Positions 3,267-56,858 of a DNA stretch of 64,000 nt are shown piece after piece. Position 1 is the first letter of the stretch. Each line of letters starts with the position of its first letter. Below the pieces are notes generated by a model. That model ran no database searches. It saw nothing but the letters and a program-made list of their open reading frames with translations, and had not been told where the DNA came from. The stretch comes from Obrimoposthia wandeli. Its lineage: Eukaryota. The position numbers were made by a program, and so were the translations under genes. The stretch is taken from the NCBI GenBank assembly GCA_977020255.1, contig CDROCS010000506.1:1550001-1614000 (forward strand), given 5' to 3'.

Positions 3267-3380
3267 AACAGTCTCATGTTCTACGCAGAATGATAGACAG
3301 TTATGATATGAGGTTAATGACAGAGGTAACACAGTAATACTACTGATCGTGGGCTGATAATCGGTGAAGACGTATTAAAC

Positions 3381-38175: not shown

Positions 38176-38231
38176 CTGTCATTAAAACGTCATAAAAATG
38201 CATAAAAGTTGTCACATAAAAACCATAATAT
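38176..38231 (+). promoter_or_regulatory. Pho (PhoB) box array with -10 element for the ABC/phosphatase operon
   Basis: Heptads at 11-bp spacing: CTGTCAT(38176), ACGTCAT(38187), ATGCATA(38198, degenerate), TTGTCAC(38209). TAATAT starts at 38226, 10 nt after the last heptad. Confidence 0.8.
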
Positions 38232-38271
38232 GCACAGCGTACTTACTCACCTGTCTAGGAAGATAGAGATA

Positions 38272-39321: not shown

Positions 39322-39380
39322 AAACGAACTCTTTGATATTAACTAAAAGTACTTTTTCACATCAACTAAAAGAGCAGCTA

Positions 39381-40283: not shown

Positions 40284-41173
40284 ACACTATTTCAGTTCCC
40301 GCAGTGGAAACCTCAAACACCAAGTCAACTCGCAAACTGTTGCGATTAACTAAATTTAAACCGGCATTAATCTTGTTGCCGTTTGCACTGCTGTTTTTTA
40401 TGTTTCAGATTGCCCCGATGTTGTGGGTATTGTTCAACAGTTTCATTTATGAAGATGAATTTAGCTTAGAAAATTATCAAGAGATTTTTGATTCTGCTTT
40501 TATTCTCCAAGGCTTTACCAATAGCTTATGGTTAGCGGTCACCTCAAGCCTCGTCGCTATTATCATTGCAGCATTATTTGTGTCTTCATTACGCCGTTTT
40601 GATTCTCGCGTTCGCGACTTAATCGTCGCATTTACCAACATGACAGCCAACTTTAGCGGTGTGCCACTGGCGTTTGCCTTTATTATCATTCTTGGTTTTA
40701 ACGGCGCATTAACGTTATTACTGAAGAAATACGGCATTATTGATGATTTTAATTTGTATGGTCAGTGGGGATTACTGGCTATTTATATCTATTTTCAAGT
40801 GCCACTAGCGACCTTACTACTCTACCCCGCATTCGATGCTCTTAGTGATGATTGGCAAGCTGCATCATCCTTGTTGGGTGCTAAAAATTGGCAGTTCTGG
40901 CGTTACATCGGTCTACCGGTATTATCTCCAGCCTTGCTTGGTACCTTTATCATTTTAATTGCCAATGCAATGGGTGCTTATGCCAGTATCTACGCGTTAA
41001 CATCGGGCAACTACAATGTGATTACCGTACGTATTGCGAGTCTGGTATCCGGCGATATCTTCCTGGAACCGAACCTAGCAGCCGCTATTTCAGTATTACT
41101 TATTTTATTACTGGCGTTCATCACGCTGATCAACCAACTACTTATTAGTCGGAGCTACCATGCCAAACGCTAA
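40280..41173 (+). CDS. ABC transporter permease
   Basis: Multi-TM; NFSGVPLAFAF; EAA-like WQAASSLLGA. Confidence 0.9.
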   Translation: MNTISVPAVETSNTKSTRKLLRLTKFKPALILLPFALLFFMFQIAPMLWVLFNSFIYEDEFSLENYQEIFDSAFILQGFTNSLWLAVTSSLVAIIIAALFVSSLRRFDSRVRDLIVAFTNMTANFSGVPLAFAFIIILGFNGALTLLLKKYGIIDDFNLYGQWGLLAIYIYFQVPLATLLLYPAFDALSDDWQAASSLLGAKNWQFWRYIGLPVLSPALLGTFIILIANAMGAYASIYALTSGNYNVITVRIASLVSGDIFLEPNLAAAISVLLILLLAFITLINQLLISRSYHAKR

Positions 41174-41948
41174 TTCTTCGCTCTACCATAAAGCCATTGT
41201 TTATAGCACGATAGCGGTATTGGTCATCCCGATCCTCGCGACGTTTTTATATTCAATTTCATCGAGCTGGGGCGCAACCATCTTACCAAGTGGCTTTACA
41301 TTTGATTGGTATAGCCAGTTATGGCAAGACCCGCGCTTTATAGCTGCATTTGGTCGCTCACTGCTTGTTTGTATTAGTGCATTATTATTAAGTGCTCTGT
41401 TGATCATTCCAGCCATTTTTGTGGTGTTTTATTATTTCCCTAAATTAAATGGCTTGATGAATATCCTGATCTTATTACCCTTTGCGGTACCGCCAGTGGT
41501 GTCGTCTGTGGGTTTACTGCAAATATACGCAGACAGCTCAATACAAATTGTTGGTACGCCGTGGATCTTAATCGGTACTTATTTCACGATTGCCCTGCCG
41601 TTCATGTACCGCGCCATTGCCAATAGTTTTGAAGCCATTAATTTAGCCGATCTGATGGATGCAGCGCACTTACTGGGGGCGAGTACCGCACAAGCCTTCT
41701 TCCTGATTATTTTACCCAACTTGAAGAAAGGATTACTGGCATCGCTGTTTTTATCTTTCTCGTTCTTATTGGGTGAATTTGTATTTTCGAACATTTTGGT
41801 GGGGACTCGTTATGAAACCCTGCAAATCTATTTATATAACATGCGTCAAACCAGTGGTCATTTCACATCAGCATTAGTCATGACTTATTTCGCCTTTATT
41901 TTCCTTTTCACTTGGTTGGCCAGCCGTATTAGCCGAGGAGCTCAATAA
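41160..41948 (+). CDS. ABC transporter permease
   Basis: LLPFAVPPVV, LMDAAHLLGAS, SFSFLLGEF. Confidence 0.9.
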   Translation: MPNANSSLYHKAIVYSTIAVLVIPILATFLYSISSSWGATILPSGFTFDWYSQLWQDPRFIAAFGRSLLVCISALLLSALLIIPAIFVVFYYFPKLNGLMNILILLPFAVPPVVSSVGLLQIYADSSIQIVGTPWILIGTYFTIALPFMYRAIANSFEAINLADLMDAAHLLGASTAQAFFLIILPNLKKGLLASLFLSFSFLLGEFVFSNILVGTRYETLQIYLYNMRQTSGHFTSALVMTYFAFIFLFTWLASRISRGAQ

Positions 41949-42964
41949 TGAGTTTTGTTACTGTAAAAAATCTACAAAAAAGCTTTGGTAGCAATACCGT
42001 ATTTTCTGACATTAATTTCAGTATCGCACAAGGTGAATTTGTTACCTTACTCGGCCCAAGTGGCTGTGGTAAATCAACCTTGTTACGTAGCCTAGCCGGA
42101 CTTAATAGTGTCGACAAAGGTGAAATATGGGTTGGAGAGCAAAACATTACCGACTTAGCACCGCAAAAAAGAGACATCGGTATGGTATTTCAATCATATG
42201 CTTTATTTCCTAATATGACCGTGGCGAATAACATCGCTTTCGGGCTTAAAATGAAAAAACTGCATAAAGATGAAATAGCGAAACAAGTGGCTCGGGTAAT
42301 TGAATTAGTCGAATTAAAAGGTAAAGAAAACCAGCATCCACACCAATTATCAGGTGGACAAAGACAACGTGTCGCCTTGGCGCGCGCCTTAGTCGTACAG
42401 CCAAATATCTTATTACTTGATGAACCACTGTCAGCGTTGGATGCACGTATTCGTAAGCATTTACGCCAACAAATTTGTGATATTCAAAAAGAACTTAACC
42501 TGACGACAGTATTTGTAACCCATGATCAAGAAGAGGCGATGACCATGTCTGACCGTATCTTTTTGATGAATGAAGGCTCGATTGTGCAACAAGGCAGTGC
42601 CGAGCAAATCTATACCCAGCCCCACAATGAATTTGTGGCAGGATTCATGGGTAATTATAATTTATTATCAGCGCAACAAGCGCAAGATGTACTTGGGGTG
42701 AGCATTAAAAATAAATTAGCTATCCGTCCTGAATCCATTTATGTTCGTGAATCAGGCCGTGATTATGGTTCGCATATTTCTCCCCCAACTCGAGGCATCA
42801 TTAAAAGCCATCAATTATTGGGCAATGTGATCCGTTACCAGGTCGATGTAAAAGGCTGTGATATTACCGTCGATTTATTAAATCGCTCATCAGAACGGTT
42901 ATTCGCAACGGGTACTCCGCTAGAACTATTGTTTAACCTAAACGAATTACAACAGGTCAGTTAA
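41948..42964 (+). CDS. ABC transporter ATP-binding protein (PotA-like, TOBE domain)
   Basis: GPSGCGKST, LSGGQRQRVALARA, LLLDEPLSALD. Confidence 0.95.
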   Translation: MSFVTVKNLQKSFGSNTVFSDINFSIAQGEFVTLLGPSGCGKSTLLRSLAGLNSVDKGEIWVGEQNITDLAPQKRDIGMVFQSYALFPNMTVANNIAFGLKMKKLHKDEIAKQVARVIELVELKGKENQHPHQLSGGQRQRVALARALVVQPNILLLDEPLSALDARIRKHLRQQICDIQKELNLTTVFVTHDQEEAMTMSDRIFLMNEGSIVQQGSAEQIYTQPHNEFVAGFMGNYNLLSAQQAQDVLGVSIKNKLAIRPESIYVRESGRDYGSHISPPTRGIIKSHQLLGNVIRYQVDVKGCDITVDLLNRSSERLFATGTPLELLFNLNELQQVS

Positions 42965-42975
42965 GAGAGCATAAC

Positions 42976-43638
42976 ATGAGCCAACCACTGTATATTTTTG
43001 ATCTAGACGAAACCTTGATTGCGGCTGATAGTGCTATGTTATGGCATCAGTTTTTAGTCGAGAAAAGTATTATCACCGACAGTAATTTTTTAGCCGAAGA
43101 TAAACGCTTAATGAGTCTGTATTCTGCCGGTAAATTAGATATGCCAGAATACCTTAATTTTGCCATGGCGCCGCTTGCACATTTGACGAAACAGCAAGTT
43201 GATAGCTTGGTTGATGAATGTGTCGAAAAATATATTATGCCAACGGTATTTCCGCAAGCACTGCAATTATTAGCGCAACTAAAGCAAGACAACATCACCA
43301 CGGTATTAATCTCGGCGACGGTCAGTTTTATTGTAAAAAAAGTAGCGGTAAAACTGGGTATTGAACATGCCATGGGCATTGATATGCAGGTAGCTGATGG
43401 CTGTTATACGGCAAATATTCTGGGTGTTGCTAGTTACCGTGAAGGTAAAGTCATTCGTTTACAGTCTTGGTTAGCTGAACAAACCGAAGTTTATAACGAC
43501 AGCTATTTTTATACCGACTCGATTAACGACCTGCCGTTATGCTTATTTAGCCAATATCCGCATGTTGTTAACCCTTGTCCGCAATTAGCTCAGCATGCAC
43601 AGACTCAAAACTGGCCGCAATTATCGTGGCGTCTGTAA
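42976..43638 (+). CDS. HAD-IB (SerB-like) phosphatase
   Basis: IFDLDETLI, LISAT, GKV, FYTDSINDLPL, VNP. Confidence 0.92.
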   Translation: MSQPLYIFDLDETLIAADSAMLWHQFLVEKSIITDSNFLAEDKRLMSLYSAGKLDMPEYLNFAMAPLAHLTKQQVDSLVDECVEKYIMPTVFPQALQLLAQLKQDNITTVLISATVSFIVKKVAVKLGIEHAMGIDMQVADGCYTANILGVASYREGKVIRLQSWLAEQTEVYNDSYFYTDSINDLPLCLFSQYPHVVNPCPQLAQHAQTQNWPQLSWRL

Positions 43639-43767: not shown

Positions 43768-44925
43768 TTAAAATCGTGGATACAACGCCGCTTTCTTACC
43801 TGTCACTTTACCCACTGGGAATGAGAAATAAATCACTCGTTGTACAACTGAAGCATACTGGCTAAAGAAACTACCGGTGTTATAAGCAATGCCATATTTA
43901 GCCGCGATAACTTGCACTTCTTTCGACATTTCAACATAACGGTGTGCAGGCACTTCTGGGAATAAATGATGCTCAACCTGACAGCTTAAATGACCCGTTA
44001 AAATATGGAACCATTTAGGACCAGTTAAATTAGCAGAGCCTAAAATTTGACGATAATACCAATGCCCACGAGATTCATTTTCACATTCTTTTTCGGTAAA
44101 GGTATACACTTCTGTTGGAAAGTGACCACAGAAAATAATCGTTGAAGTCCAAAAGTTACGCAATAAATTAGCCGCTAAATTACCCAGCAATACCATCACA
44201 AAAAACGGGCCAGCTAAGAGTGGGAAGATTACGTAATCTTTGAGAATTTGACGCGTTGATTTGCTATAAAATACTTTCTTTAATTGCTCAACATCAACGT
44301 GTGATCCTCGACCCTCTTTTTTCTTACCAAAGAATACCCGTTCACCAGCCATTTCATGGAATGCGATACCCCATTGAAATAAAGTACTGAGCACAAGATA
44401 AGTAACGAACTGCCATGAATTACGCAAGCGCCAAGAGAAATCATCACTTAGACGTAATAAACCATAACCAAAATCGCGATCCTTACCGACAATATTTGTG
44501 TAAGTATGGTGTTCGTAATTATGCACGCGCTTCCATGATTCCGAACTACAGGCGTTATCCCATTCAAACGTTTGCGAGTTCAGCGTTGGATCGTTCATCC
44601 AATCATATTGACCGTGCAAAACGTTATGACCAATTTCCATGTTATCTAAGATCTTCGATGCGCTTAATAGCAGCACGCCCACACCCCAGAAATACAGAGA
44701 AAGAAAACCCAGTACAAGACAAATTCGCCCAGATATTTCTAACGTACGCTGTAGACGTACAATCTTTTTAATATAACGTTCATCGGCAGTTCCCACTTGA
44801 TTCATGGCTTTGGCTTTTACGCCATCGAGATCTATCGCCAGTTGTTCTAATTGCTCTTCATTTAACTTTTGACCAAATTTTTTATCTAACTCTTTATCTA
44901 ATTCTTTATTTAACTTTGCCATCAT
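43768..44925 (-). CDS. Membrane acyl-CoA/fatty acid desaturase (DesB/DesA3-like)
   Basis: His boxes HNVLH, HNYEHH, QVEHHLFP; MEIGHN..HGQYDWM motif. Confidence 0.92.
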   Translation of the reverse strand: MMAKLNKELDKELDKKFGQKLNEEQLEQLAIDLDGVKAKAMNQVGTADERYIKKIVRLQRTLEISGRICLVLGFLSLYFWGVGVLLLSASKILDNMEIGHNVLHGQYDWMNDPTLNSQTFEWDNACSSESWKRVHNYEHHTYTNIVGKDRDFGYGLLRLSDDFSWRLRNSWQFVTYLVLSTLFQWGIAFHEMAGERVFFGKKKEGRGSHVDVEQLKKVFYSKSTRQILKDYVIFPLLAGPFFVMVLLGNLAANLLRNFWTSTIIFCGHFPTEVYTFTEKECENESRGHWYYRQILGSANLTGPKWFHILTGHLSCQVEHHLFPEVPAHRYVEMSKEVQVIAAKYGIAYNTGSFFSQYASVVQRVIYFSFPVGKVTGKKAALYPRF

Positions 44926-44932
44926 CTTATCC

Positions 44933-46057
44933 CTATAAATTAATCACGACATCAGTCACTGGAACACTAATACAGGCTTGGATATCTTCTTCACCGGTAT
45001 CTGAATATGTTTTTGTTTGGCTGTTATAAACCACACCACTTACTTTCTTACATTTACACTCTTGGCAAATTCCCATGCGGCAGCCATATTTAGCTGGGAC
45101 CACATTATCCTCGGCAAGCATTAACAGTGTTTTCTGATTGTCTTCATCAACAACTATGTCTTTATTGGTTATAGCGAACGACACATTACGCACAACATTC
45201 AGATCGACATTACGAAAACTTGCTAAGCCAAACTGCTCAAGATGCAATGATTCTTCAGGTAGTCCCATGTCCAATAATAATTCTCGCGTACTATCCATCA
45301 TGCTATTTGGGCCACAAATATAGGCTTCACTACGTTGTAAATCGCTCGTCACTGCATTGATATGCGCTGCTGAACAATGACCATCACGCTCACTTTTTAA
45401 TAATTTTAAAGTGAAATTATTATGATCTAGCTCTAATGCAACCAAGCTCTCGTTCAAAGCATGTTGATTAGCGCGGGCAAAATACAATAATGTAAAATTA
45501 ATCGTCGGGTTATTAGCAACATGCGATAACAGCAAACTATGAAAAGGCGTAATACCACTGCCACCAGCAATAAATATCACCTCTTTATTTGAGGCCCTGT
45601 TGGATAAAGATCTTGATGGCGCACTCAACACAAAATCACCTTTCGCAGGTGAAACACCTAACATTTCGCCTTTCTTAATAGCACTTGATAACCAGGGTGT
45701 CACACGGCCTTCAAATTGCTTTTTAATGGTTAAGGTGATGGTTTTATCTTGCTGTAATTGCGCTAGCGAAGATGAAATAGTAAAAGGACGTTTAATGTAG
45801 CTACCATTCTTTTTTACTTGCAGCTCAATATATTGTCCTGGCTGAAAAGAAAAATGCTGTTCATTCACTTTTCCTGAAATCGCTAGTGTTAATGAATACA
45901 TATCATTATTTTCAGTTTTCATTTTCACGACTGTCGCAGCAAACATCTCCCCCATAAGTACGGAGATCGGTTTAGTCGAAAATGGGGCAAAGTAAGCCTT
46001 AAACGTATCGTTATTAAATAACGTCAGTGATAATTTATTGGTTAAAACATTAAGCAT
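44933..46057 (-). CDS. Ferredoxin reductase-like flavoprotein with C-terminal 2Fe-2S domain (desaturase electron donor)
   Basis: FQPGQY, RPFTISS, IAGGSGITPF, YICGP, CRMGICQECKC...C. Confidence 0.92.
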   Translation of the reverse strand: MLNVLTNKLSLTLFNNDTFKAYFAPFSTKPISVLMGEMFAATVVKMKTENNDMYSLTLAISGKVNEQHFSFQPGQYIELQVKKNGSYIKRPFTISSSLAQLQQDKTITLTIKKQFEGRVTPWLSSAIKKGEMLGVSPAKGDFVLSAPSRSLSNRASNKEVIFIAGGSGITPFHSLLLSHVANNPTINFTLLYFARANQHALNESLVALELDHNNFTLKLLKSERDGHCSAAHINAVTSDLQRSEAYICGPNSMMDSTRELLLDMGLPEESLHLEQFGLASFRNVDLNVVRNVSFAITNKDIVVDEDNQKTLLMLAEDNVVPAKYGCRMGICQECKCKKVSGVVYNSQTKTYSDTGEEDIQACISVPVTDVVINL

Positions 46058-46230: not shown

Positions 46231-46467
46231 ATAAAAATTAAACATCTAATTTCAGTGAGTTATTTATTACTAACAACTCAAAAATAGATACTCAGATATG
46301 AACATAAGATCCAGTATCAACATATGCGAGTCATTTACAGGTTATAGCCAAAGCATTAATTTAACTGAGCAGCTACATCAATAAATCTAATACTGACGTG
46401 CTGGATACTGTCATGTTATTCAGGTATTGTGGCGCGCTCATTAATATTGCTAGAAACGATAAAAACC

Positions 46468-46821
46468 ATGTTGAAAATACTGACTACCATGCCACCTAAT
46501 TTATTACTGCTACTAGCGATTATCTTTGAGGTGATCGCAACATCCTTATTACCAAAAACTCAGCAATTCAGTCAGCCGTTAATAAGTGCGATTGTATTAA
46601 TTTGCTATGCGTTGGCATTTTTCTTACTGTCGATCACCATCAAATCAGTGCCTATTGGCGTCGCATATGCAATCTGGTGTGGGGCGGGTATCGTACTTGT
46701 CACTATGATTAGCTGGTTGTGGTATGGCCAACAGCTCGACTGGGTTGCCATTGTAGGGATAAGTTTGATTTTACTCGGCAGTGTCATTATTAATGTTTTC
46801 TCAACAACTATTAGTCATTAA
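46468..46821 (+). CDS. SMR-family (EmrE/QacE-like) transporter
   Basis: LAIIFEVIAT (conserved Glu), GVAYAIWCGAG, four TM helices. Confidence 0.92.
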   Translation: MLKILTTMPPNLLLLLAIIFEVIATSLLPKTQQFSQPLISAIVLICYALAFFLLSITIKSVPIGVAYAIWCGAGIVLVTMISWLWYGQQLDWVAIVGISLILLGSVIINVFSTTISH

Positions 46822-46868
46822 CAAACTAAAACTAGTCATTAATAAACTAAGACTAGCCATTAATAAAT
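46812..46868. repeat. 21-bp tandem duplication of the SMR gene 3' end (x2.7)
   Basis: tagtcattaacaaactaaaac/tagtcattaataaactaagac/tagccattaataaat. Confidence 0.8.
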
Positions 46869-46882: not shown

Positions 46883-46916
46883 GTTTCATCATACTGTCAT
46901 AAAAATACACTACCTT
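46883..46916 (+). promoter_or_regulatory. Pho (PhoB) box with -10 element upstream of the LysR gene
   Basis: GTTTCAT-cata-CTGTCAT (5/7 and 7/7, 11-bp spacing); TACCTT starts 10 nt downstream; ATG at 46942. Confidence 0.68.
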
Positions 46917-46941
46917 AGCCATTTTATGGTTAAGGTTATGT

Positions 46942-47835
46942 ATGCTTCCACCACAACGTTCATTATTAGCTTTCGAAGCTGTATCTCGACTCGGCTCAAT
47001 AGGCGCGGCATCACGTGAACTTCACGTTACGCAAGCAGCGGTAAGCCAACAGCTAAAAAATCTTGAACAGTTCCTTAATTGTACTTTGTTTATTCGTAAT
47101 CAACGTGGCGTGACATTAACCCAAGCCGCGCAACAATACTTACCCGTGGTATCCGGATCACTACAACACCTTAAATTACAAACTCAAATATTATTTGGCC
47201 AACAACAGTCTGATGTCTTGCGCATTAAAGTGAATACGTCACTTTGCCATAATTGGTTGATTCCAAAATTAGCTGATTTCACCAATAAATTTGCCTTTAT
47301 TAAATTAGATCTGACGTTAGTGGATTGGCCATCTCGACAACCCTGCAGTGATGCCGATGTTGAAATCACCAATGGCTTTATCGACAGCGAAGGTACTCAA
47401 GCAACCCCCTTATGCCAAGAGCAATGGGTAATGGTGTGCAGCCCAGCATTCAAACAACGACACTGTGATGCCCTCGAAAAAAATGATATTTCGCAGCTGC
47501 CAGCCATTCAAGTAAAAGGTTATGAAGAAAGCTGGATGCAATGGTTATGTCATCATGATATCGCGCCTGTCTCACCTAATATTCAACTCGAAATAAGTAA
47601 TTCACTACATGGTTTAGAAGCCGTAAAACAAGGTATTGGCTTAATGCTAGTGCGTTCGCTAGTAGCCGAAAAAGCGCTGGTCTCTGGCGAACTTGTGCTA
47701 GCGATGGCAGGCAGCATGCCCTCTGATTCAAGCCATTACATCATTACTGCCAATAAGCGCAGCGCCAAAGTAAATTTCTTTTGCGATTGGCTCGACCAAC
47801 AAGAACGCAGGCAACAATATGACCTAGCCATATAG
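46942..47835 (+). CDS. LysR-family transcriptional regulator (GcvA-like)
   Basis: LPPQRSLLAFEAVSRLGSI..ASRELHVTQAAVSQQLK.LE HTH; substrate-binding domain. Confidence 0.95.
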   Translation: MLPPQRSLLAFEAVSRLGSIGAASRELHVTQAAVSQQLKNLEQFLNCTLFIRNQRGVTLTQAAQQYLPVVSGSLQHLKLQTQILFGQQQSDVLRIKVNTSLCHNWLIPKLADFTNKFAFIKLDLTLVDWPSRQPCSDADVEITNGFIDSEGTQATPLCQEQWVMVCSPAFKQRHCDALEKNDISQLPAIQVKGYEESWMQWLCHHDIAPVSPNIQLEISNSLHGLEAVKQGIGLMLVRSLVAEKALVSGELVLAMAGSMPSDSSHYIITANKRSAKVNFFCDWLDQQERRQQYDLAI

Positions 47836-48027
47836 CCTAACCATATAACCTAAAAAATAGCCTAAAAAAGAGAGTCATGACGCGAACCCCGTCATTTTTT
47901 CTAATGTGTAATCGTCATAGCCATCACTTTTTCTTATGCCTGACGATGGAAAATATGATGATGACACAAACAAATTTGTCACAGTGCCACTCTATGATGC
48001 AGCCATACAGTTAAGGACAAACTAAGC

Positions 48028-48912
48028 ATGAAGATTAATTCACACATTATGTCGGAAAAACTAAAGGTACTATTATTTATAGCGCCTTTATTGATCCCCC
48101 TATTAGCTTTTTGGATCGTACCATTCGGTTGGAGCATCTACATCAGCTTTACCGACTGGGATTATATTTCCCCAGAATATAGCTACGTTGGTTTTGAAAA
48201 CTACCAATACATGATTGAAGACAGCTACTTTACTGAAGCGCTTTACAATACCTTCGTATTTTCACTGGGCGTTGTGATTCCAACGGTAATACTAGGATTG
48301 GGCTTTGCCTTATTACTGCATAAAAACTTTCGTGGCAGCCAACTTTATCGCGCCGTTATATTTTCACCTTGGATCACCCCTACTGTTGCAGTATCAATCG
48401 TTTGGTCATGGGTGTTTGAAACCAAATCTGGTTTAGTTAATTTGTTGTTAGCTAAAATAGGTATAGCACCAGTCGCTTGGTTAGAAAGCGGTGATACAGC
48501 GATGACAGTGGTTATTATTGTGACCGTTTGGCAAGCCGTTGGTTGGACTATGTTGTTCTTCATTAGCGCGCTAAACAAGATCCCGACATCGTTATATGAA
48601 GCGTCACTGATTGATGGCTGCAGTCCATTAACGCGTTTCATAAAAATCACTTTACCGCTGATTTCACCAACCACATTTTTCCTTATTATTGTCAACATGA
48701 TCAATTCGGTACAAGCCTTTGATCAATTCCAAATATTAACGCAAGGCGGCCCAAGCGGTAGCACCCGAACATTATTATATTTGTTCTATCAGCAAGCATT
48801 TGAGCAATACGATATGGGCCCTGCGGCAGCAACATCACTCATCATCTTAGTTATCACCGGCGTATTAACATTGATTAATACCGAGATGGGTAAACGCTGG
48901 ATATATTATTAA
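48028..48912 (+). CDS. CUT1 carbohydrate/glycerophosphodiester ABC permease (UgpA-like)
   Basis: YVGFENY, SPWITPTVAVSIVW, LYEASLIDG, ITLPLISPT, TQGGP. Confidence 0.92.
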   Translation: MKINSHIMSEKLKVLLFIAPLLIPLLAFWIVPFGWSIYISFTDWDYISPEYSYVGFENYQYMIEDSYFTEALYNTFVFSLGVVIPTVILGLGFALLLHKNFRGSQLYRAVIFSPWITPTVAVSIVWSWVFETKSGLVNLLLAKIGIAPVAWLESGDTAMTVVIIVTVWQAVGWTMLFFISALNKIPTSLYEASLIDGCSPLTRFIKITLPLISPTTFFLIIVNMINSVQAFDQFQILTQGGPSGSTRTLLYLFYQQAFEQYDMGPAAATSLIILVITGVLTLINTEMGKRWIYY

Positions 48913-48923
48913 GGAATACACTG

Positions 48924-49862
48924 ATGAGCACTCAATCTATTGATTTACCTTTGGTTAATTTCCAAAGCAGCGAACCAAAAAATACAGCAAACAAGAAAAT
49001 GGCAAAACCAGCAACACCGATTAATACATTAATAAAATCATTCGCTAGTTTGGTCGCGAAACACGGGTTTTTAAGCGCGTCGGGTTTGATTATGGTGTTC
49101 CCGTTTGTATGGATGATATCCGGGTCAATGAAAACCAATGACGAGATATTTAGTAATCCACTGAATATCTTGCCAGAAACATTTCATTGGCAAACATTTG
49201 TAGACACATTTGAAAGTGCGCCATTTGGTTTGTACATCATGAACAGTTTCACGGTGGCATTTTTCACGACACTGATCGTCATGATTAACTCAGCAATGTT
49301 TGCTTATGCAATCACTCAATTTAAGTTTAAGTCACAAACTGCGCTGTATTTCGTGGTAATGGCTTGTTACATGTTACCCGGCGCGGTGACCTATATTCCG
49401 TCTTATATTACCTTAGCGAACTTAGGTTTATTAGACAGCCACACAGGTTTGATCATTTCCAATGCAGCCAGTGTATTCGGGGTGTTTTACCTACGCCAAG
49501 TATTTTTAAAAGTGCATCCGTCACTGATTGAAGCTGCGCGAATTGATGGAGCCGGAGAAGTTAAAATTCTTTGGGCAATCGTGTTACCACAGTGCAAAGC
49601 AGCGTTAGCTACCTTGTTCTTGATTACCTTTATTACTAACTACAACAGTTATATGTGGCCAAGCCTACTTATCACCACTCAAGATCTTAATTTGATTGCG
49701 ACGGGGATCAGGCAGTTCTTTATTGCCGAAGGTAACTACGGTTTGAACTGGTCACAGATTATGGCAGCAAGCACAATTGCAGTAATGCCACTGTTGATTC
49801 TATTCATTATTTGTCAAAAAACAATTTTGTCCGGCATTGCCGATAACGGCGTAAAAGAGTAA
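48924..49862 (+). CDS. CUT1 ABC permease (UgpE-like)
   Basis: PFVWMISGSMK, MLPGAVTYIPSY, LIEAARIDGA, NSYMWP. Confidence 0.92.
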   Translation: MSTQSIDLPLVNFQSSEPKNTANKKMAKPATPINTLIKSFASLVAKHGFLSASGLIMVFPFVWMISGSMKTNDEIFSNPLNILPETFHWQTFVDTFESAPFGLYIMNSFTVAFFTTLIVMINSAMFAYAITQFKFKSQTALYFVVMACYMLPGAVTYIPSYITLANLGLLDSHTGLIISNAASVFGVFYLRQVFLKVHPSLIEAARIDGAGEVKILWAIVLPQCKAALATLFLITFITNYNSYMWPSLLITTQDLNLIATGIRQFFIAEGNYGLNWSQIMAASTIAVMPLLILFIICQKTILSGIADNGVKE

Positions 49863-49868
49863 ATAAAT

Positions 49869-51149
49869 ATGAAACTGAAAACATTAGCAATTGTATGTTC
49901 TAGCTACGCAGCGGGCGCATTAGCGTTTGCAGGTAGCGCAATGGCGACAACCGAAGTGGACTTTTGGTATTCTGGTGGCTCAAAGCAGCAGCAGTTAATG
50001 ACCTCTCTGGTATCTGAATTTAACAGTAGCCAACAAGACTATGTGATTAAAAGTGCCTTACAAGGTAATTACGATGAAACCTATCAGAAACTTCAAGCGG
50101 GTTTAGCATCAAAGACAGCGCCTGAATTTGTACTGCTTTATTCTAGCCAAGCAAAAATGATGGTAGCGCGTAATCTGACGCGTGATCTTCGCCCTTACAT
50201 GGACGACAGCTTTAACTATGCTGATTTCCTTGATGCATTCCGCGATCAGGTAACTGCAGATAATGGCGAGGTTTACGGACTTCCAGCATATGGCACCACG
50301 CAAATATTCTATTACAACAAGCAAGTATTAGCAGACCATGGTTTCACTGCCAAAGACTTAAGCACATGGCAAGGCGTAGCAAAAGTATCTGCTGCGGTAA
50401 CCAAAAAAGATGCCAAAGGCAACACGACATTTTATGGTTGGGAACCAATGTGGGGTGAAGAAAACTTAATTGATGCGGCTTATTCTAATGGCGGAAAAAT
50501 CATTAGTGATGACGGTAAAACCATTTTAATTAACTCTCCAGAGTGGATAACCGTTTGGAACAGCTTCCGTAAATGGATCCACGAAGATGAAACGATGCGT
50601 ATTCATCACGGTGGTCAAGGCTGGGAATACTGGTACAAGACGATTGATGATGTAGTGAAAGATCGTGCACTGGGTTATACCGGTTCATCAGGCGATCAAG
50701 GTGATCTTGATTTCACTAAACTTGGCGCAACAACGCAACCAGGTTGGGGTAACAACCCTGCAGCACCACAAGCTGGCGCAGTAAGTTTTGTTATGCCAAA
50801 AGGTACGGATGATAACGCTGCACAAGGTGCGTTTGAATTCATGAAGTTTTATACCTCGGCTGAAAATACTGCGCGTTGGTCTATGACTACAGGTTATATC
50901 CCAGTGCGTAAAAGTGTAAAAGATGTGCCTGCATACCAAGCTTACACAGCGAAAAACCCGCAAGCATTGATACCACTTCTGCAAGCAACTACGGCAAGTC
51001 AGGACTTCTTTGACCCGACTAAAGGCAAGATCACCGATGCACTTTCTATTGCTGCGGATCAGATCTTAATTGAAAATATTCCAGCTGAAAAAGCCCTTAA
51101 GCAAGCGGCTAAACGTGCACAGCGCGCACTAGACCGTGCTAATCGCTAA
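49869..51149 (+). CDS. ABC substrate-binding protein (UgpB-like)
   Basis: Signal peptide AMA|TT, EVDFWY, QGNYDE, T.IFYYNK, F..FYTS.EN.A.WS..TGYIPV. Confidence 0.88.
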   Translation: MKLKTLAIVCSSYAAGALAFAGSAMATTEVDFWYSGGSKQQQLMTSLVSEFNSSQQDYVIKSALQGNYDETYQKLQAGLASKTAPEFVLLYSSQAKMMVARNLTRDLRPYMDDSFNYADFLDAFRDQVTADNGEVYGLPAYGTTQIFYYNKQVLADHGFTAKDLSTWQGVAKVSAAVTKKDAKGNTTFYGWEPMWGEENLIDAAYSNGGKIISDDGKTILINSPEWITVWNSFRKWIHEDETMRIHHGGQGWEYWYKTIDDVVKDRALGYTGSSGDQGDLDFTKLGATTQPGWGNNPAAPQAGAVSFVMPKGTDDNAAQGAFEFMKFYTSAENTARWSMTTGYIPVRKSVKDVPAYQAYTAKNPQALIPLLQATTASQDFFDPTKGKITDALSIAADQILIENIPAEKALKQAAKRAQRALDRANR

Positions 51150-51214
51150 ACTTATCTATGTCTCGATATGAAACATAAGTATGAAATATAGATAAAGAAA
51201 AATAAGACGAATAA

Positions 51215-51245
51215 TTGGTGATGGGTGTTCAGCATTCATCACCAA
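51215..51245 (+). other. Stem-loop after the SBP gene (probable mRNA-stabilising or attenuating hairpin)
   Basis: ttggtgatg...catcaccaa; intra-operonic, with no U-tract. Confidence 0.55.
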
Positions 51246-51272
51246 CATAACTAATAACAACAAGGATTAACC

Positions 51273-52796
51273 ATGTTGAATTTTACCGGTGAATTGGTCT
51301 TTGGCCATCGCGTTTTGAATTTTAATGTTAGCGCTAATATTAAAACCCTTACCCTAACTGGCACCACAGTTAAAAAAGGCTTTTTATATGCTTACCTGTA
51401 TGACAGTGAGCAGCAATTACGCGCCAATTTATTATTTCAAAAAACCGATAAAACACTAATCTTAACGCCTGAATCTGCTTCACTTGGCGGTATCGCAGGA
51501 AACCTCCCTGCTGGTGATTGGCAATTACACCTATATAACCTTGAAGGTGAAAATCGCACACCCAAGGCGATGCATTATGCTATTGATATTGATATTGATT
51601 TAAATGAGCAGCTTGAAACTGAATACAGCACCAACACACAATTACTCGAAACTCCGACTCAAGCCTGCTTGCTTACCAATCCAGGTTCACCATTAGATCA
51701 CAGCATTCATTTTGATTATCACCACAGTAAAAATAATAATGCAGCTTGGTATCGCGGTGATTTACACGCTCACACCTTATTATCCGATGGTCACAATACC
51801 CTTGCTGCAGCGGCGCAAATAGCCGAGCAACAAGCGCTCGATTTCTTTTTTATTACCGAACACAATATTTGCCACCCTGCATTGCCCGTTACCGACAAAA
51901 CATTAATTTTACCTGCAATTGAAGTCACCACAGACCAAGGACATTTTAATGTTCACGGCCCTCGCCGTATGCTCAACATGTTCAATGCCGCTTATTCAAG
52001 TGCTGCACTGATTGAACAAGGTCTTGGTTTAGTTGCCAACGATGAAGGCAATATCAGTATTAACCACCCAATGATGAAACCATGGCATTGGCATTATCAA
52101 AATATTCAATTAGATAAAGTAAATACCTTGGAAATTTGTTGTGATCCAACATGGCCTACCTCACCGAAAGCCACTGAAGGCGCATTAACTCTACTCACGC
52201 AGCTATGGAATTGTGGTCATCGTATCGCAGGCGTTGGCGGCAGTGATTCGCATTTAGCACCCCATGAACGTAACGCTAATGCAACGGAACCGTCCATTTA
52301 TGGCGATCCAAGTACTTTTGTGCATGCCGATACACTGTCGGGTAATGGTATTTTACAAGGCTTACGTCAAGGACATGTTTATCTAGAACGTCAATGTGGT
52401 TTGGATTTTCAAATTAATAATGGCACGGTATTACCGGGTCAAGATGTAGGTAACAAGGTTATCGATTATCGCCTAGCAGTCACAGATAAACGCACTGCAT
52501 ATTATGCCGAATGTATCGCCGATGGCGAAGTGATAAGCCGTATAAAACTAACCGATGAAGACTCTCATTTCCAAGTTGATATGAGCAACTATGCCTGGCT
52601 ACGTATTGATATTCGTCGCGGTACTTTTCTTAATAACAGTTATGACAATAGTGCTGATAACAGTAATGACAACGACCCTGCTGAATTTGAAGGGCTAATA
52701 AACCCAATTTATAACGCGACCAAAACTATCTTTAGCCACCCTCTGGTAAATACTTGGGGCGAATTAATGGAAGAGACAAATACCCATGGAAATTAA
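51273..52796 (+). CDS. CehA/McbA-family PHP-domain metallohydrolase
   Basis: WYRGDLHAHT..SDG, ITEHN, IEVTT..GHFN, NHP, GGSDSH; no signal peptide. Confidence 0.85.
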   Translation: MLNFTGELVFGHRVLNFNVSANIKTLTLTGTTVKKGFLYAYLYDSEQQLRANLLFQKTDKTLILTPESASLGGIAGNLPAGDWQLHLYNLEGENRTPKAMHYAIDIDIDLNEQLETEYSTNTQLLETPTQACLLTNPGSPLDHSIHFDYHHSKNNNAAWYRGDLHAHTLLSDGHNTLAAAAQIAEQQALDFFFITEHNICHPALPVTDKTLILPAIEVTTDQGHFNVHGPRRMLNMFNAAYSSAALIEQGLGLVANDEGNISINHPMMKPWHWHYQNIQLDKVNTLEICCDPTWPTSPKATEGALTLLTQLWNCGHRIAGVGGSDSHLAPHERNANATEPSIYGDPSTFVHADTLSGNGILQGLRQGHVYLERQCGLDFQINNGTVLPGQDVGNKVIDYRLAVTDKRTAYYAECIADGEVISRIKLTDEDSHFQVDMSNYAWLRIDIRRGTFLNNSYDNSADNSNDNDPAEFEGLINPIYNATKTIFSHPLVNTWGELMEETNTHGN

Positions 52797-53538
52797 AGGA
52801 TTACTATTCGACAAAGATGGCACCTTGCTCGAGTTTCATCAGATGTGGCTACAAGTAGCCAAAGGCGCAGCTGCTGATACCCTTAACGCTTACCCACCTG
52901 AAAGTAGCTGCGATGATGATAAAACCAACGTAGATATTACAGCTTTGTTGGCTGCCATTGGTGTGCACGGTGACTATGTTGATAATCATGGATTGCTGGC
53001 TTCCAACCCTGTCGAGGACACGGCTGAGGCTTGGTATCAATTACTGCAATTAAGCAGTGATAAAAGCCAATTCAGCCAGACAGTGAAAAAGCTATTCAAC
53101 AAACAGGTTGAAGATAACCCAGCCTTGATCCAAGCCTTACCCGAGGTTAAAGACAAATTAATAGATCTAAAAGCCCAAGGCTTCAAATTGGGTATTGCCA
53201 CTGCGGACAGTAAAGACGCCACTCTCTATAGTTTAATACAGACGCAATTACACGATTTATTCGACTTTGTTGGTTATTCCGATGGCGATATTGCGCCGAA
53301 ACCAGCCCCGGCATTATTGAATGCTTTTTGCCAAGTCTGCGATCTAGTACCAGAGCAAGTGATCATGTTTGGCGATACCGTTTCTGATATGAAATTTGGC
53401 CGTAATGCAGGCGCTAGCACCATCGGCGTTTTAACTGGCACAGCAACCGAAGACGAATTAAAGCCTTATGCAGATATTGTCCTGTATTCAGTTGCTGACT
53501 TTAATACTGATTTGTTGATGACAATTAATCAGCGCTAA
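52786..53538 (+). CDS. HAD-IA family phosphatase
   Basis: LFDKDGTL, GIATAD, KPAP, MFGDTVSD; start overlaps the PHP gene stop. Confidence 0.92.
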   Translation: MEIKGLLFDKDGTLLEFHQMWLQVAKGAAADTLNAYPPESSCDDDKTNVDITALLAAIGVHGDYVDNHGLLASNPVEDTAEAWYQLLQLSSDKSQFSQTVKKLFNKQVEDNPALIQALPEVKDKLIDLKAQGFKLGIATADSKDATLYSLIQTQLHDLFDFVGYSDGDIAPKPAPALLNAFCQVCDLVPEQVIMFGDTVSDMKFGRNAGASTIGVLTGTATEDELKPYADIVLYSVADFNTDLLMTINQR

Positions 53539-53590
53539 TAGCGGCTAATCATTATCACGAATAATTACCACAAATAATACGGAAATCATA

Positions 53591-54730
53591 ATGGCTGAAG
53601 TAATATTACGTCAGGTAGAAAAAGTTTATCCAAATGGATTTAAAGCTGTTCACGGTATCGACCTTACGATCCATGAAGGTGAGTTTATGGTCTTTGTTGG
53701 TCCATCGGGCTGTGCAAAATCGACCACATTACGCATGATCGCGGGATTAGAAGACATCAGTGATGGCCAGATCATGATCGGTAATAAGTGCGTTAATAAT
53801 TTACCGCCTAAAGATCGCGGTATCTCCATGGTTTTTCAAAACTATGCCCTATACCCGCACATGTCGGTATATGAAAATATGGCGTTTGGTTTAAAGCAGC
53901 AAAAAATCAATAAACGCGAAATAGAACGTCGTATTAGTGATGCGGCTGAGACATTAGAAATCACCCACTTATTAGCAAGTAAGCCCGGTGAAATGTCAGG
54001 TGGTCAACGCCAACGAGTTGCGTTAGGCCGAGCGATGGTACGCAAACCCGATGTATTTTTATTTGATGAACCCTTATCTAACTTAGATGCTAAATTACGT
54101 GTATCTACCCGTATCAGTATTGCCCAATTACATCATGATTTAAAAGCCGAAGGCCAAAATGCGACGATGATTTATGTCACCCATGATCAAGTTGAAGCGA
54201 TGACACTCGGTGATCGTATTTGCGTACTTGATCAAGGTAAAATCATGCAAGTGGATACACCGATGAACTTGTATCATTCACCGGCAAATAAATTTGTTGC
54301 AGGCTTTATTGGCTCTCCGGCAATGAACTTACTGCGCGCAACGGTAAGCCAAGAAAATGATGCCACTTACATCCAATTAGATAATGGTGCTAAATTTTTA
54401 TTACCAAGCGATAAAGCGGAAAAAGTGACGGGAAAAATCGGTCAACAAGTTTGGTTTGGATTACGCCCTGAGCACATATCTCTCGTTGCGCCATCGACAG
54501 AAGCGGCGACAGCCCAAGAACAAAATATTGAACTCACTTACATCAAAGTAGTGGAGTCGATGGGTAATGAAATGTATCTCTATTGCGCATTAGGACAAGA
54601 GCAGATCATTGCGCGTTGTCATTTTGATCCAAAGATTAATATTCAGCATAGTGAAAGTCATTATATGCATTTTGATATGTCACATTGCCATTTGTTTGAT
54701 ATTGATACCGAACTGGCACTCGTTAATTAA
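53591..54730 (+). CDS. CUT1 ABC ATP-binding protein (UgpC/MalK-like)
   Basis: GPSGCAKST, MVFQNYALYPHM, MSGGQRQRVALGRA, FDEPLSNLDAKLR, TOBE domain. Confidence 0.95.
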   Translation: MAEVILRQVEKVYPNGFKAVHGIDLTIHEGEFMVFVGPSGCAKSTTLRMIAGLEDISDGQIMIGNKCVNNLPPKDRGISMVFQNYALYPHMSVYENMAFGLKQQKINKREIERRISDAAETLEITHLLASKPGEMSGGQRQRVALGRAMVRKPDVFLFDEPLSNLDAKLRVSTRISIAQLHHDLKAEGQNATMIYVTHDQVEAMTLGDRICVLDQGKIMQVDTPMNLYHSPANKFVAGFIGSPAMNLLRATVSQENDATYIQLDNGAKFLLPSDKAEKVTGKIGQQVWFGLRPEHISLVAPSTEAATAQEQNIELTYIKVVESMGNEMYLYCALGQEQIIARCHFDPKINIQHSESHYMHFDMSHCHLFDIDTELALVN

Positions 54731-54870: not shown

Positions 54871-55683
54871 TTAAACAACAGTCACACGATGTAATTTACG
54901 TGGGCTATCGGCATAATCAATTACTGCATAATGTTGCGTACTGCGGTTATCCCAAATAGCTAATGAATTGGCCTGCCACTTAAAACGCACTTGATACTCG
55001 GGTTGTCTAGCCATGGCAAACAGCTTTGCGAGTAAAGCATTACTGTCCTCGCGATCCATACCAATAATATAACGGGTGAATTGCTCGTTAATAAATAATA
55101 TCTCTTCCCCGGTGTCAGGATGGCGCGTAATAACCGGATGCGATACCGGTGGATTTTTTGCTGATACCGCGATGACATCTTTCTGCCAATCTTCAGTGAT
55201 CTCGCTACTTTCAATACCATCAAAAGCAAATAATGCATGCATCGCTGATAACTGACGTAGTAGTATTTTATCTTGTTCTGGTAATGCGTTAAATACAGCG
55301 GTCATCGAGCACCACAGGGTATCACCGCCACATTGAGGCACATGTTGGGCATGCAACACCGAGGCAATAGAAGGTTGCTGACGCCAGGTTAAATCTGTAT
55401 GCCAAAAACTTTCTAACGGTGGCTTGCCCTTAACCGTTTCAATAATACTGACTTGCGGTGCTTGTTCGACATGCGGAAAAAAAGGATGTGTCGGTTCCAA
55501 TTCACCAAAACGCGCAGCAATTTTTAAATGTTGCTGCGGTGAAAATGCTTGGTCACGTAAAAAAATAACCTGATGGGTAAACCAAGCTTTATAAACGGCT
55601 GCAAATGTCGTGTCATCGCAATTGACCAGATCCACATCGTGGATCAAGGCGCCTATATGCGGAGTAAGCAGCTCAATGCGCAT
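54871..55683 (-). CDS. tauD: TauD/TfdA-family Fe(II)/2-oxoglutarate dioxygenase
   Basis: L.PHIGA.I..VDL, WHTD.TW, GGDTLW, HPVI.RHPDTG, WDNRSTQHYA, LHRVT. Confidence 0.9.
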   Translation of the reverse strand: MRIELLTPHIGALIHDVDLVNCDDTTFAAVYKAWFTHQVIFLRDQAFSPQQHLKIAARFGELEPTHPFFPHVEQAPQVSIIETVKGKPPLESFWHTDLTWRQQPSIASVLHAQHVPQCGGDTLWCSMTAVFNALPEQDKILLRQLSAMHALFAFDGIESSEITEDWQKDVIAVSAKNPPVSHPVITRHPDTGEEILFINEQFTRYIIGMDREDSNALLAKLFAMARQPEYQVRFKWQANSLAIWDNRSTQHYAVIDYADSPRKLHRVTVV

Positions 55684-55688
55684 GCCGG

Positions 55689-56858
55689 TTACTCTTCAAT
55701 CGAGGACGTCTGAGTTTCAACATCCGCATCCATTGCAATACGGTTTAAGTCCGTCACAATTTGCTGCTCGACTACATCATCAGTTAAGTCACCAGTTAAA
55801 ACGTCAGTCTCAGCTAAAGCACCTTTAACTTTTTCTGTTAAGCTAATAATAAGCTTAGCCTGTTCATCATTAAGCTCTTTTTGTTGGTGCAATTGATGAC
55901 GTAGGGCATTATCAAAATACGTAATTTGTTCTATATACGTTAGGCTCGAAATATCTTTTGAAAATAACTTAAAGGCCACCGTCGCAATCGCGTCACGATA
56001 ACGTAAGGCAATTTTTTCACTTTCCGAACGATCGACACTATTGATCCAATGAACTTCCGTTGTCACATTAATAGCGCGACGTAAATCGTCTTCAACTTTG
56101 ACAATGATGGCATCAAGAATATGCTGCTCGCGTGGCGCTAATTCAATTGCATCTTTTAATTGCAGAATACGTTGTTGGATTTGAGCATATGTTTCTGGGA
56201 TCAACTCTTGATCCAGCTTTTTCATTTTCTTAACCAACGGCGTATAGGAGTTACTTTTTACAATTTTAATTTCAAGCTGTAACAAACGAGCTTGTATCTT
56301 CGCGCTACTTTGCTCATAACCGTCTGTTGACTCATCATCTTCAATATCTTCAATTAAGTCCGCAGTACTTTCATGAATATCATCTAATTCATTCTGCCAT
56401 TGGCCATGAACGTGGGGAGATAAGTATTCCATGTCCGCGAGTTGTTGAGTTAAAAATACAGACACTAATGTTTTGATACGCACAGCGTTATCTAACGCTT
56501 CTTGCGCTTCTTCAATTTTATCAGTTACTTTACTTTCTGAAGGACCGCCAAAAAAGCCTTGATCGTTAGGATCAAATTTAGCCACTAATGTGCGCATTGA
56601 ACGCACAGCAGAATTAATCTTTTTCCAACTATCCGGAGCAAAAAAAACGTAATCTTCATCTTTACCCGCGTCATATTGTTGTTCAACATGCTCAGCTAAG
56701 GCTTTTACTTTTTGTATTGCCAGTGCCGCTTCATCCATGACTTCGACAGCATTGCTATTATCAACGCTACCTTGCGTTGATTCAGATGACGCACAACCTG
56801 ACAATCCTGCAGCCGATATAATCATCGCTGCACACAGGGTTTTCTTCATGTTGTTCAT
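55689..56858 (-). CDS. Hypothetical alpha-helical lipoprotein
   Basis: 389-aa ORF, lipobox LSGC, coiled-coil character; no recognised domain. Confidence 0.75.
   Translation of the reverse strand: MNNMKKTLCAAMIISAAGLSGCASSESTQGSVDNSNAVEVMDEAALAIQKVKALAEHVEQQYDAGKDEDYVFFAPDSWKKINSAVRSMRTLVAKFDPNDQGFFGGPSESKVTDKIEEAQEALDNAVRIKTLVSVFLTQQLADMEYLSPHVHGQWQNELDDIHESTADLIEDIEDDESTDGYEQSSAKIQARLLQLEIKIVKSNSYTPLVKKMKKLDQELIPETYAQIQQRILQLKDAIELAPREQHILDAIIVKVEDDLRRAINVTTEVHWINSVDRSESEKIALRYRDAIATVAFKLFSKDISSLTYIEQITYFDNALRHQLHQQKELNDEQAKLIISLTEKVKGALAETDVLTGDLTDDVVEQQIVTDLNRIAMDADVETQTSSIEE

Follow-up and report, generated by a model that had tools for sequence, protein, structure and literature searches.

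A conserved gene cluster pairing a PHP metallohydrolase and a HAD phosphatase with a UgpB-clade importer, predicted to scavenge organophosphates under phosphate starvation

The import-and-cleave routes for organic phosphorus that are understood so far are few, namely, Ugp with UgpQ, the phosphonate systems, and the recently described GpxB. The ugpBAECQ operon is responsible for Pho-regulated uptake of glycerol-3-phosphate (G3P) and glycerophosphodiesters, followed by hydrolysis in the cytoplasm through the GDPD enzyme UgpQ, as known from E. coli and from the UgpB proteins of Phaeobacter and Mycobacterium tuberculosis. In the Agrobacterium acc operon for agrocinopine, a sugar phosphodiester is imported whole by an oligopeptide-type ATP-binding cassette (ABC) transporter, cut by the GDPD-type phosphodiesterase AccF, and dephosphorylated as the monoester by the inositol-monophosphatase-type phosphatase AccG, with a dedicated regulator and an involvement of phosphate limitation. 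The PHP diesterases Sb-PDE and No-PDE of Sphingomonadaceae and the cyclic phosphate dihydrolase Elen0235 have also been described; Sb-PDE was described as only the second known PHP enzyme with diester-cutting activity, and 3E38 is the only solved structure in its similarity network (PMC11656708). Here, we analyze a gene cluster in the region 46883–54730 of a 64,000-nt stretch of contig CDROCS010000506.1 (hereafter the window, whose positions are used below), which combines a PHP metallohydrolase and a HAD phosphatase with a UgpB-clade importer and a LysR-type regulator. We consider it probable that the cluster provides for phosphate-starvation-induced, substrate-gated import of an organophosphate and intracellular release of its phosphate, separately from the Ugp system of the host.

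According to the list of open reading frames (ORFs), the cluster consists of seven co-directional genes, all on the + strand, spanning 46942–54730:

46942..47835, + strand: LysR-type regulator, GcvA-like subfamily (PF00126 (HTH_1) 8.6e-20, PF03466 (LysR_substrate) 2.3e-23)
48028..48912, + strand: ABC permease, UgpA/MalF-like, CUT1 (BPD_transp_1; UgpA model 171 bits, below the cut-off of 335)
48924..49862, + strand: ABC permease, UgpE/MalG-like, CUT1 (BPD_transp_1; UgpE model 164 bits, below the cut-off of 297)
49869..51149, + strand: periplasmic substrate-binding protein (SBP), UgpB clade of CUT1 (SBP_bac_8; UgpB model NF008211 91.7 bits, cut-off 411)
51273..52796, + strand: 507-amino-acid (aa), three-domain PHP metallohydrolase, CehA/McbA family (NF038032 154.3 bits, cut-off 80, residues 159–480)
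52786..53538, + strand: HAD-IA phosphatase (HAD_2 2.8e-24 / Hydrolase; 11-nt overlap with the PHP gene)
53591..54730, + strand: ABC ATPase, UgpC/MalK type (ABC_tran, OB_MalK, TOBE_2; UgpC subfamily 457 bits, above the cut-off of 432)

All seven genes had been called at these coordinates in an earlier, sequence-only reading of this DNA, and Pfam and NCBIfam searches confirmed the families assigned there. The regulator carries both the N-terminal HTH_1 domain and the substrate-binding domain of the LysR type, with GcvA as the top NCBIfam model (198 bits, below the cut-off of 288). The overlap of the HAD and PHP genes, likewise noticed earlier, measures 11 nt (52786 vs 52796), through which the HAD appears to be translationally coupled to the PHP enzyme. 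The domain searches detected no glycosidase and no GDPD domain among the seven cluster genes, as the sequence-only reading had also stated for GDPD/UgpQ and glycosidases. The PHP protein has its closest homologues in Moritella (89–95% identity), and therefore we take the host of the cluster to be a Moritella relative. The whole assembly comprises 1.35 Gb in 6912 contigs and contains many, differing bacterial ugpB and GDPD copies on separate contigs; it is pooled or metagenome-like, with several organisms, and the 3.78-Mb contig that includes the window is Moritella-like.

The cluster resembles ugpBAECQ in its CUT1 architecture, UgpC-type ATPase, UgpB-clade SBP that, by alignment, appears to retain three of the four phosphate contacts, PhoB-type promoter, and predicted hydrolysis after transport. 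It differs in gene order (permeases, SBP, enzymes, ATPase), in the presence of PHP and HAD enzymes instead of a GDPD, and in the insertion of a dedicated LysR regulator; furthermore, the SBP falls short of the UgpB equivalog score (91.7 vs 411), and no GDPD is encoded in or beside the operon. A genuine ugpBAEC operon is located elsewhere on the same 3.78-Mb contig (57069–61400), with UgpB scoring 382–384 bits, UgpE and UgpC above their cut-offs, and no adjacent ugpQ, and a GDPD gene lies on this contig at 968843–969529, about 600 kb from the cluster. Because these genes coexist with the cluster on one contig, the cluster is a distinct, paralogous system rather than Ugp with UgpQ exchanged, and the earlier description of it as an importer in which UgpQ is replaced by PHP and HAD enzymes is misleading, given the separate ugpBAEC with its own Pho box and the GDPD gene. 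The logic of the acc operon is similar to that proposed here, but the transporter, diesterase and phosphatase families all differ.

The PHP protein retains a complete set of metal ligands. Residues H165, H167, D172, H197, E217, H224, H265, D325 and H327 are invariant in 27 homologues, down to 27% identity, in the context H165-x-H167, T195-E196-H197, G223-H224, N264-H265-P266 and D325-x-H327, so that all the motifs picked out in the sequence-only reading (HxH, TEH, GH, NHP, DxH) are present and invariant. The nine residues match the alpha, beta and gamma metal ligands of Sb-PDE and No-PDE one for one, with the same local spacing (PMC11656708), and constitute the full trinuclear, nine-ligand site of the PHP superfamily (HxH, D, H, bridging E, H, H, DxH). 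No Pfam family matched the 507-aa protein, which scores above the NF038032 cut-off. Its AlphaFold2 (AF2) model, with a predicted local distance difference test (pLDDT) score of 91.8, consists of an N-terminal beta-sandwich (approximately residues 1–110), the PHP barrel, and a C-terminal beta-sandwich (approximately residues 376–480). Foldseek retrieved 3E38 as the best match (6e-10), followed by RNase AM, TM0559, PsfC and BAD_1165, at probability 1.00, in agreement with a PHP barrel fold. A sequence search against solved structures yielded a sole match, to the first motif of TM0559, whereas a profile search of the PDB retrieved only PHP phosphoesterases, all distant, with no characterized close relative among them; the relatives found include RNase AM, PolX exonuclease domains and pAp phosphatase. 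Look-alikes in the ESM Atlas were only more unnamed CehA/McbA or PHP clusters. Because no signal peptide was apparent by eye, the enzyme is expected to act in the cytoplasm, where we predict that it cleaves phosphoesters.

The HAD-IA motifs D9-x-D11-G12-T13, T139, K172 and G196-D197...D201 are invariant in 26 orthologues, and all four motifs of the class are present. The top family matches of this protein are generic HAD-IA phosphatases, accompanied by weak matches to pyrimidine nucleotidases. A plausible division of labor would have the PHP enzyme cleave a diester and the HAD enzyme hydrolyze the resulting monoester. The PHP protein of the cluster resembles Sb-PDE and No-PDE in its nine-residue trinuclear site, in its nearest fold (3E38), and in acting, as predicted, midway along a phosphorus-scavenging route, ahead of a phosphatase. 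In contrast to these enzymes, it shows no detectable sequence similarity to them past the first PHP motif, carries the extra N- and C-terminal beta-sandwiches, and is encoded in a conserved transporter operon, implying a natural rather than a xenobiotic substrate. With CehA and McbA it shares the NF038032 match above the cut-off; unlike those proteins, which act on carbamate pesticides and are encoded in catabolic, transposon-like clusters, it is accompanied by a phosphatase and a UgpB-clade importer under predicted Pho control, and our analysis yielded no evidence of carbamate chemistry for it.

The SBP, with a signal peptide that by eye ends at about residue 26 and an AF2 model (pLDDT 91.5) in which residues 1–24 are disordered, also points to a phosphate-bearing ligand. 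A profile built from 31 orthologues and searched against structures matched best the Phaeobacter UgpB (9LFF, 8e-43), followed by the M. tuberculosis UgpB for glycerophosphocholine (7e-34), a Thermus thermophilus dinucleotide binder (2e-33) and the E. coli UgpB (1e-32), compared with 3e-25 for the nearest sugar binder (trehalose/maltose); the top structures in Foldseek were 7C0V, 6R1B and 9LFF. In UgpB (Phaeobacter numbering), phosphate is contacted by Tyr64, Ser143, Ser266 and Tyr342, and the glycerol hydroxyls by Glu88 and Arg393, with a Trp188/Trp191 clamp (PMC12718374). Based on sequence alignment only, we mapped these residues with the help of three genuine UgpB sequences that the same assembly encodes, aligned to the SBP family. 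Three phosphate contacts align with invariant residues of the SBP family, Tyr64 with Y68, Ser143 with T143 and Tyr342 with Y343. The glycerol-binding arginine is missing: Arg393 corresponds to T389 here and to L, M, K or F in relatives, a position described as variable and non-basic, and Glu88 corresponds to Y91 here and to D, N or T in relatives. The alignment around the Trp188/Trp191 clamp is ambiguous. In addition, the family contains an invariant aromatic block, GGQGWEYWYKTxDD (residues 248–260), that is absent from UgpB. Our reading is that the SBP recognizes phosphate and that its second sub-site may accommodate a moiety different from glycerol.

The promoter of the LysR gene has the layout of a PhoB-dependent promoter:

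46883..46900, + strand: Pho box GTTTCAT-cata-CTGTCAT, 12/14 consensus positions (heptads 46883–46889 and 46894–46900)
46911..46916, + strand: -10 hexamer TACCTT, 10 nt (46901–46910) after the last heptad; no -35; LysR ATG at 46942

Two CTGTCAT-type 7-bp direct repeats with a 4-bp spacer thus stand in place of the -35 element, with the -10 element 10 bp downstream, exactly as first noticed in the sequence-only reading. Three sites with at most 2 mismatches to CTGTCAT-N4-CTGTCAT occur in the 64-kb window, compared with 0.37 expected from shuffles: the LysR site, one at a neighboring operon at 38176, and one at 3317–3334 (- strand). A 12/14 match alone is weak evidence, and the comparative data are decisive. 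We determined the best 18-mer score upstream of orthologous LysR genes in 16 genus- or species-level representatives, with 90 upstream regions of other genes from the same loci as controls. Scores of at least 11/14 were found in 14 of the 16 representatives and at least 10 in all 16, whereas none of the 90 control regions reached 11/14 and only 2 reached 10; the conservation that the earlier reading had proposed to check is, thus, evident. Arrays of 2–4 heptads are present upstream of LysR orthologues in at least eight genera, with two heptads in Moritella, Psychromonas and a metagenome-assembled genome of Aeromonadaceae, and four in Photobacterium, Vibrio, Endozoicomonas, Hafnia, Acerihabitans and Zobellella. 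In these promoters, the heptads are in 11-bp phase and are followed by exactly N10 and then TAC(C/T)TT or TAnnTT, with diverged flanks. The same design is found at the neighboring operon (38176) and at the genuine ugpB of this contig (ATGTCAC, CCGTAAC, GTAGAGC, CTGTCAT, ten bases, TAGAAT), an in-genome positive control. Given that such arrays recur in orthologous promoters and that no control region scores as high, a chance match can be dismissed for the LysR-gene Pho box, and PhoB control of this promoter is a well-supported prediction.

The third match in the window, at 3317–3334 (-), also 12/14, overlaps the start of ORF 2199–3332, 98 nt past the stop of the co-directional ORF 3431–4999, and is possibly due to chance. 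Close to the Pho box, one further repeat was detected:

46812..46867, + strand: 21-bp tandem repeat, 2.7 copies, unit TAGTCATTAATAAACTAAAAC (Tandem Repeats Finder score 91)

This repeat extends from the stop codon of the preceding SMR gene toward the Pho box and is absent from the orthologous spacer of Moritella dasanensis. Every unit opens with the heptad-like TAGTCAT followed by TAAT, and these words are also the opening words of the Vibrio Pho box.

A separate promoter is predicted in the 192-nt spacer between the LysR gene and the first permease gene:

47877..47895, + strand: terminator-like hairpin and T run, 3' of the LysR gene (consensus scan, pattern match only)
47928..47958, + strand: conserved element of about 30 bp, TTTTTCTTATG-N-ATGGAAAATATGA, putative LysR site (spacers of 12 genera aligned by eye)
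47976..47998, + strand: operon promoter, with a lone Pho-type heptad TTGTCAC (47976–47982), 10 nt, and -10 TATGAT (47993–47998)

In Vibrio, the 30-bp element is a clean ATGG-N4-CCAT dyad, and we infer that the element at 47928–47958 is a putative LysR-type binding site. Of 43 distinct gammaproteobacterial loci, 40 have the pattern [CT]TGTCA[CT]-N9-11-TAnnn[TA] ahead of the permease gene, versus 41 of 3304 control windows (1.2%). It lies 45–85 nt before the permease start, with the exception of Photobacterium profundum (136 nt), and the gap between heptad and -10 is ten bases in all but one or two loci. Where LysR is absent (Dickeya, Marinomonas), more phased Pho-type heptads stand ahead of the proximal one, directly before the permease gene. 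The operon promoter looks like a PhoB promoter in which the distal half has been taken over by the LysR site; joint control, by phosphate starvation and an inducer together, is suggested and is favored over a plain cascade. Of the PhoB-to-LysR cascade originally proposed, PhoB control of the LysR gene is strongly supported by the conserved Pho arrays, but the simple two-step scheme appears less likely, given that a heptad is conserved at the operon promoter too. A full two-heptad Pho box at the operon promoter of the window was considered and rejected, as the promoter-proximal heptad alone matches and the upstream position scores 2/7.

The cluster is broadly distributed. Among the species-representative genomes scanned, at least 460 stretches encode relatives of the PHP protein, and we fetched and gene-mapped 80 of such loci, 48 gammaproteobacterial and 32 from Firmicutes. 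A transporter adjoins the PHP gene in 41/48 of the gammaproteobacterial and 30/32 of the Firmicute loci, and a HAD gene in 36/48 and 29/32, respectively; a LysR gene, directly upstream of the permeases, is found in 37/48 and 0/32. The carriers include vibrios, plant soft-rot bacteria, halophilic bacilli and gut clostridia; among the Firmicutes, these are Bacillaceae (Oceanobacillus, Pontibacillus, Virgibacillus, Lentibacillus) and Clostridia, including Roseburia hominis, Mediterraneibacter and Ruminococcus, and their SBPs are 41–52% identical to the Moritella SBP. By this comparison, the arrangement permease-permease-SBP-PHP-HAD appears to be an old, widespread unit that is also retained in Firmicutes. 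In Photobacterium ganghwense, the PHP and HAD proteins are fused in one 770-aa ORF. In place of LysR, the Firmicute clusters encode DeoR/GlpR-like regulators (17 loci) or RpiR with a SIS domain (5–6 loci), families that usually sense phosphorylated sugars or polyols. No kinase or phosphotransferase system (PTS) is encoded in the Firmicute clusters, and because of this, a phosphorylated effector would have to enter the cell already phosphorylated.

Recurrent additional catabolic genes that could reveal the substrate were not found in these loci, the extra neighbors being limited to single loci and too sporadic to use: mannose-6-phosphate isomerase and FGGY kinase, in single Clostridia loci each, and an AppA-like acid phosphatase in Dickeya. 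In Dickeya, including Dickeya chrysanthemi, the cluster lacks LysR, HAD and the ATPase and is divergent from a gene of the AppA family of phytases/histidine acid phosphatases, with phased Pho-type heptads in the spacer that the two share. In Cedecea and Enterobacter, a PHP homologue (44–45% identical) is solitary, with no transporter or HAD; it is located directly after a malI-malX-malY-like unit (LacI regulator, maltose/glucose PTS IICB and PatB-type C-S lyase) and before a dipeptide permease.

Under the explanation that we favor, phosphate limitation would lead PhoB to activate the LysR-gene promoter through its Pho box, which lacks a -35 and has the -10 at 10 nt. Together with a co-inducer, presumably the substrate or an intermediate, LysR would then activate the operon promoter, probably acting jointly with PhoB at the single promoter-proximal heptad. 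The UgpB-clade SBP would capture a phosphate-bearing compound other than plain G3P, most likely a phosphodiester, which the CUT1 ABC transporter would deliver to the cytoplasm; there, the trinuclear PHP enzyme would cleave one phosphoester bond, and the HAD-IA enzyme would then free phosphate from the monoester. The organophosphate theme, already proposed in the sequence-only reading, is backed by the trinuclear PHP site, the intact HAD motifs, the PHP-HAD fusion, the UgpB-clade SBP with its apparent phosphate contacts, and the phosphosugar-type regulators of Firmicutes. We found no description of the cluster or the pathway in the searchable literature, which accords with the earlier statement that no characterized pathway with this enzyme pair is known to the reader; the pair and the regulatory layout have not been described before, whereas the general scheme of Pho-regulated import and intracellular cleavage is already known.

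Several observations weigh against this explanation. CUT1 binding proteins mostly take neutral sugars, and by fold alone sugar binders score nearly as well against the SBP as UgpB-type proteins (template modeling (TM) score 0.76–0.79); the fourth phosphate contact, Ser266, aligns to A267. CehA and McbA, the sole characterized name-givers of NF038032, hydrolyze a carbamate ester and not a phosphoester, and for this reason the chemistry of the PHP enzyme is not certain. The Moritella Pho box has two heptads only and a weak -10 (TACCTT), and the heptad at the operon promoter is a lone half-site, unlike the usual PhoB dimer site. Five gammaproteobacterial loci lack the HAD gene, seven have the PHP gene but no transporter, and in Firmicutes there is no tie of the cluster to phosphate starvation. 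Finally, all members of this family of clusters are known from sequence alone, and their function is predicted.

Some of these points would be natural if the imported compound were neutral or non-phosphorylated (a sugar, glycoside or ester), the PHP protein were a carboxyl or carbamate esterase or an amidase, and the HAD were unrelated or acted downstream. The naming of NF038032 for carbaryl hydrolases fits such a role, as do the mainly carbohydrate-directed CUT1 family, the match of the SBP fold to sugar binders (TM 0.76–0.79), the two PHP beta-sandwich domains of a kind common in carbohydrate-active enzymes, and the mannose-6-phosphate isomerase and FGGY kinase genes that follow the cluster in single Clostridia loci. 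We nevertheless regard it as unlikely, considering the Pho boxes conserved at two promoters, the complete trinuclear phosphoesterase site, and the HAD phosphatase that is conserved and, in one species, fused; moreover, the SBP profile is far nearer to UgpB-type proteins than to sugar binders (8e-43 vs 3e-25), and phosphate contacts appear to be conserved. We would give slim chances, too, to a second Ugp for G3P and ordinary glycerophosphodiesters in which, as proposed in the sequence-only reading, the PHP enzyme is a non-homologous replacement of UgpQ. Ugp models are the top matches of all four transporter parts, the nearest structures include the M. tuberculosis UgpB with glycerophosphocholine and the E. 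coli UgpB, and the cluster appears to be Pho-regulated as ugp is; but the same contig has a genuine ugpBAEC (UgpB 382 bits vs 92 here) and a GDPD gene, the Arg393 position is variable and non-basic across the SBP family with Tyr at the Glu88 position here, the invariant block GGQGWEYWYKTxDD is absent from UgpB, and the regulators dedicated to the cluster (LysR, DeoR or RpiR) imply that its inducer is specific.

Nucleic-acid fragments could also be scavenged by such a cluster, with the SBP taking up a dinucleotide, the PHP enzyme acting as a nano-nuclease or phosphodiesterase, and the HAD as a nucleotidase. The top structural match of the SBP, a T. thermophilus protein that binds uridylyl-3'-5'-phosphoguanosine, points this way, along with RNase AM, PolX exonuclease domains and pAp phosphatase among the PHP relatives and the weak HAD matches to pyrimidine nucleotidases. 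However, the dinucleotide binder matches no more closely than do UgpB proteins that bind glycerophosphocholine or G3P, nucleoside catabolic or transport genes are not recurrent beside the cluster, and the recurrent cation-efflux neighbors described below are left unexplained, making this alternative very improbable.

Cation-efflux genes recur beside the cluster. In the window, the gene of this type, a neighbor with a possible role in the pathway, is:

46429..46821, + strand: SMR-family small efflux protein, Qac/EmrE-like (Pfam Multi_Drug_Res 1.2e-25)

The top NCBIfam models of this protein are Qac/EmrE-type SMR models, every one below its cut-off. In 14 gammaproteobacterial loci, an SMR gene precedes LysR co-directionally at a distance of 75–177 nt, and in 2 Bacillaceae loci, SMR homologues immediately follow HAD. 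In seven Clostridia loci, a MATE transporter gene is co-directional with the first permease gene and 0–92 nt ahead of it. Because there are three different arrangements in three lineages, the association is unlikely to be due to chance, and this gene neighborhood suggests a small organic cation as a by-product of the pathway. Building on the favored explanation, we tentatively propose an undescribed route for phosphodiesters with a small organic-cation leaving group, a possibility that we rate as low, with choline-phosphate esters (glycerophosphocholine, phosphocholine) as the leading guess; this idea is speculative and stems from the recurrence of cation-efflux genes beside the cluster in three lineages. 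The SBP would have swapped its glycerol-binding residues for the aromatic block and would recognize phosphate together with a cationic head, the HAD would free phosphate, and the SMR or MATE pump would expel the left-over cation. Equally tentatively, such a route might span marine Vibrionaceae and Moritellaceae, soft-rot Pectobacteriaceae, halophilic Bacillaceae and gut Lachnospiraceae. If this proposal is true, the PHP protein would be the first PHP-family diesterase with a natural nutrient substrate.

The neighboring operon mentioned above, at 38176–43638, starts with a four-heptad Pho box (CTGTCAT, ACGTCAT, ATGCATA, TTGTCAC) followed by a -10 and encodes an SBP_bac_6 protein, an enzyme of the type I phosphodiesterase/nucleotide pyrophosphatase family, two permeases, an ATPase and a PF12710 HAD, so that the window contains two separate Pho-type organophosphate clusters, 3 kb apart. 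Between them, at 43768–46057 (- strand), lies a pair of genes encoding a fatty-acid desaturase and a ferredoxin-reductase-type flavoprotein (FAD/NAD binding, 2Fe-2S domain). On the other side, at 54871–56858 (- strand), a TauD-family dioxygenase gene, whose product scores 279 bits against the taurine dioxygenase model and so narrowly misses its cut-off (313), converges on the ATPase gene. It is followed by a gene for a 389-aa protein that matched nothing in an NCBIfam scan at E <= 1e-20; neither gene has an evident link to the cluster.

How organic phosphorus is scavenged affects growth in phosphate-poor ocean waters, plant tissue and the gut. The cluster described here pairs two enzyme families that were not previously linked in a nutrient pathway and has no characterized member. 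Its substrate, once solved, would add an entry to the organophosphate cycle and would attach a natural function to the large "CehA/McbA family metallohydrolase" annotation, and the operon would become a clean case of a global signal, through PhoB, and a local one, through LysR, combined at one operon.

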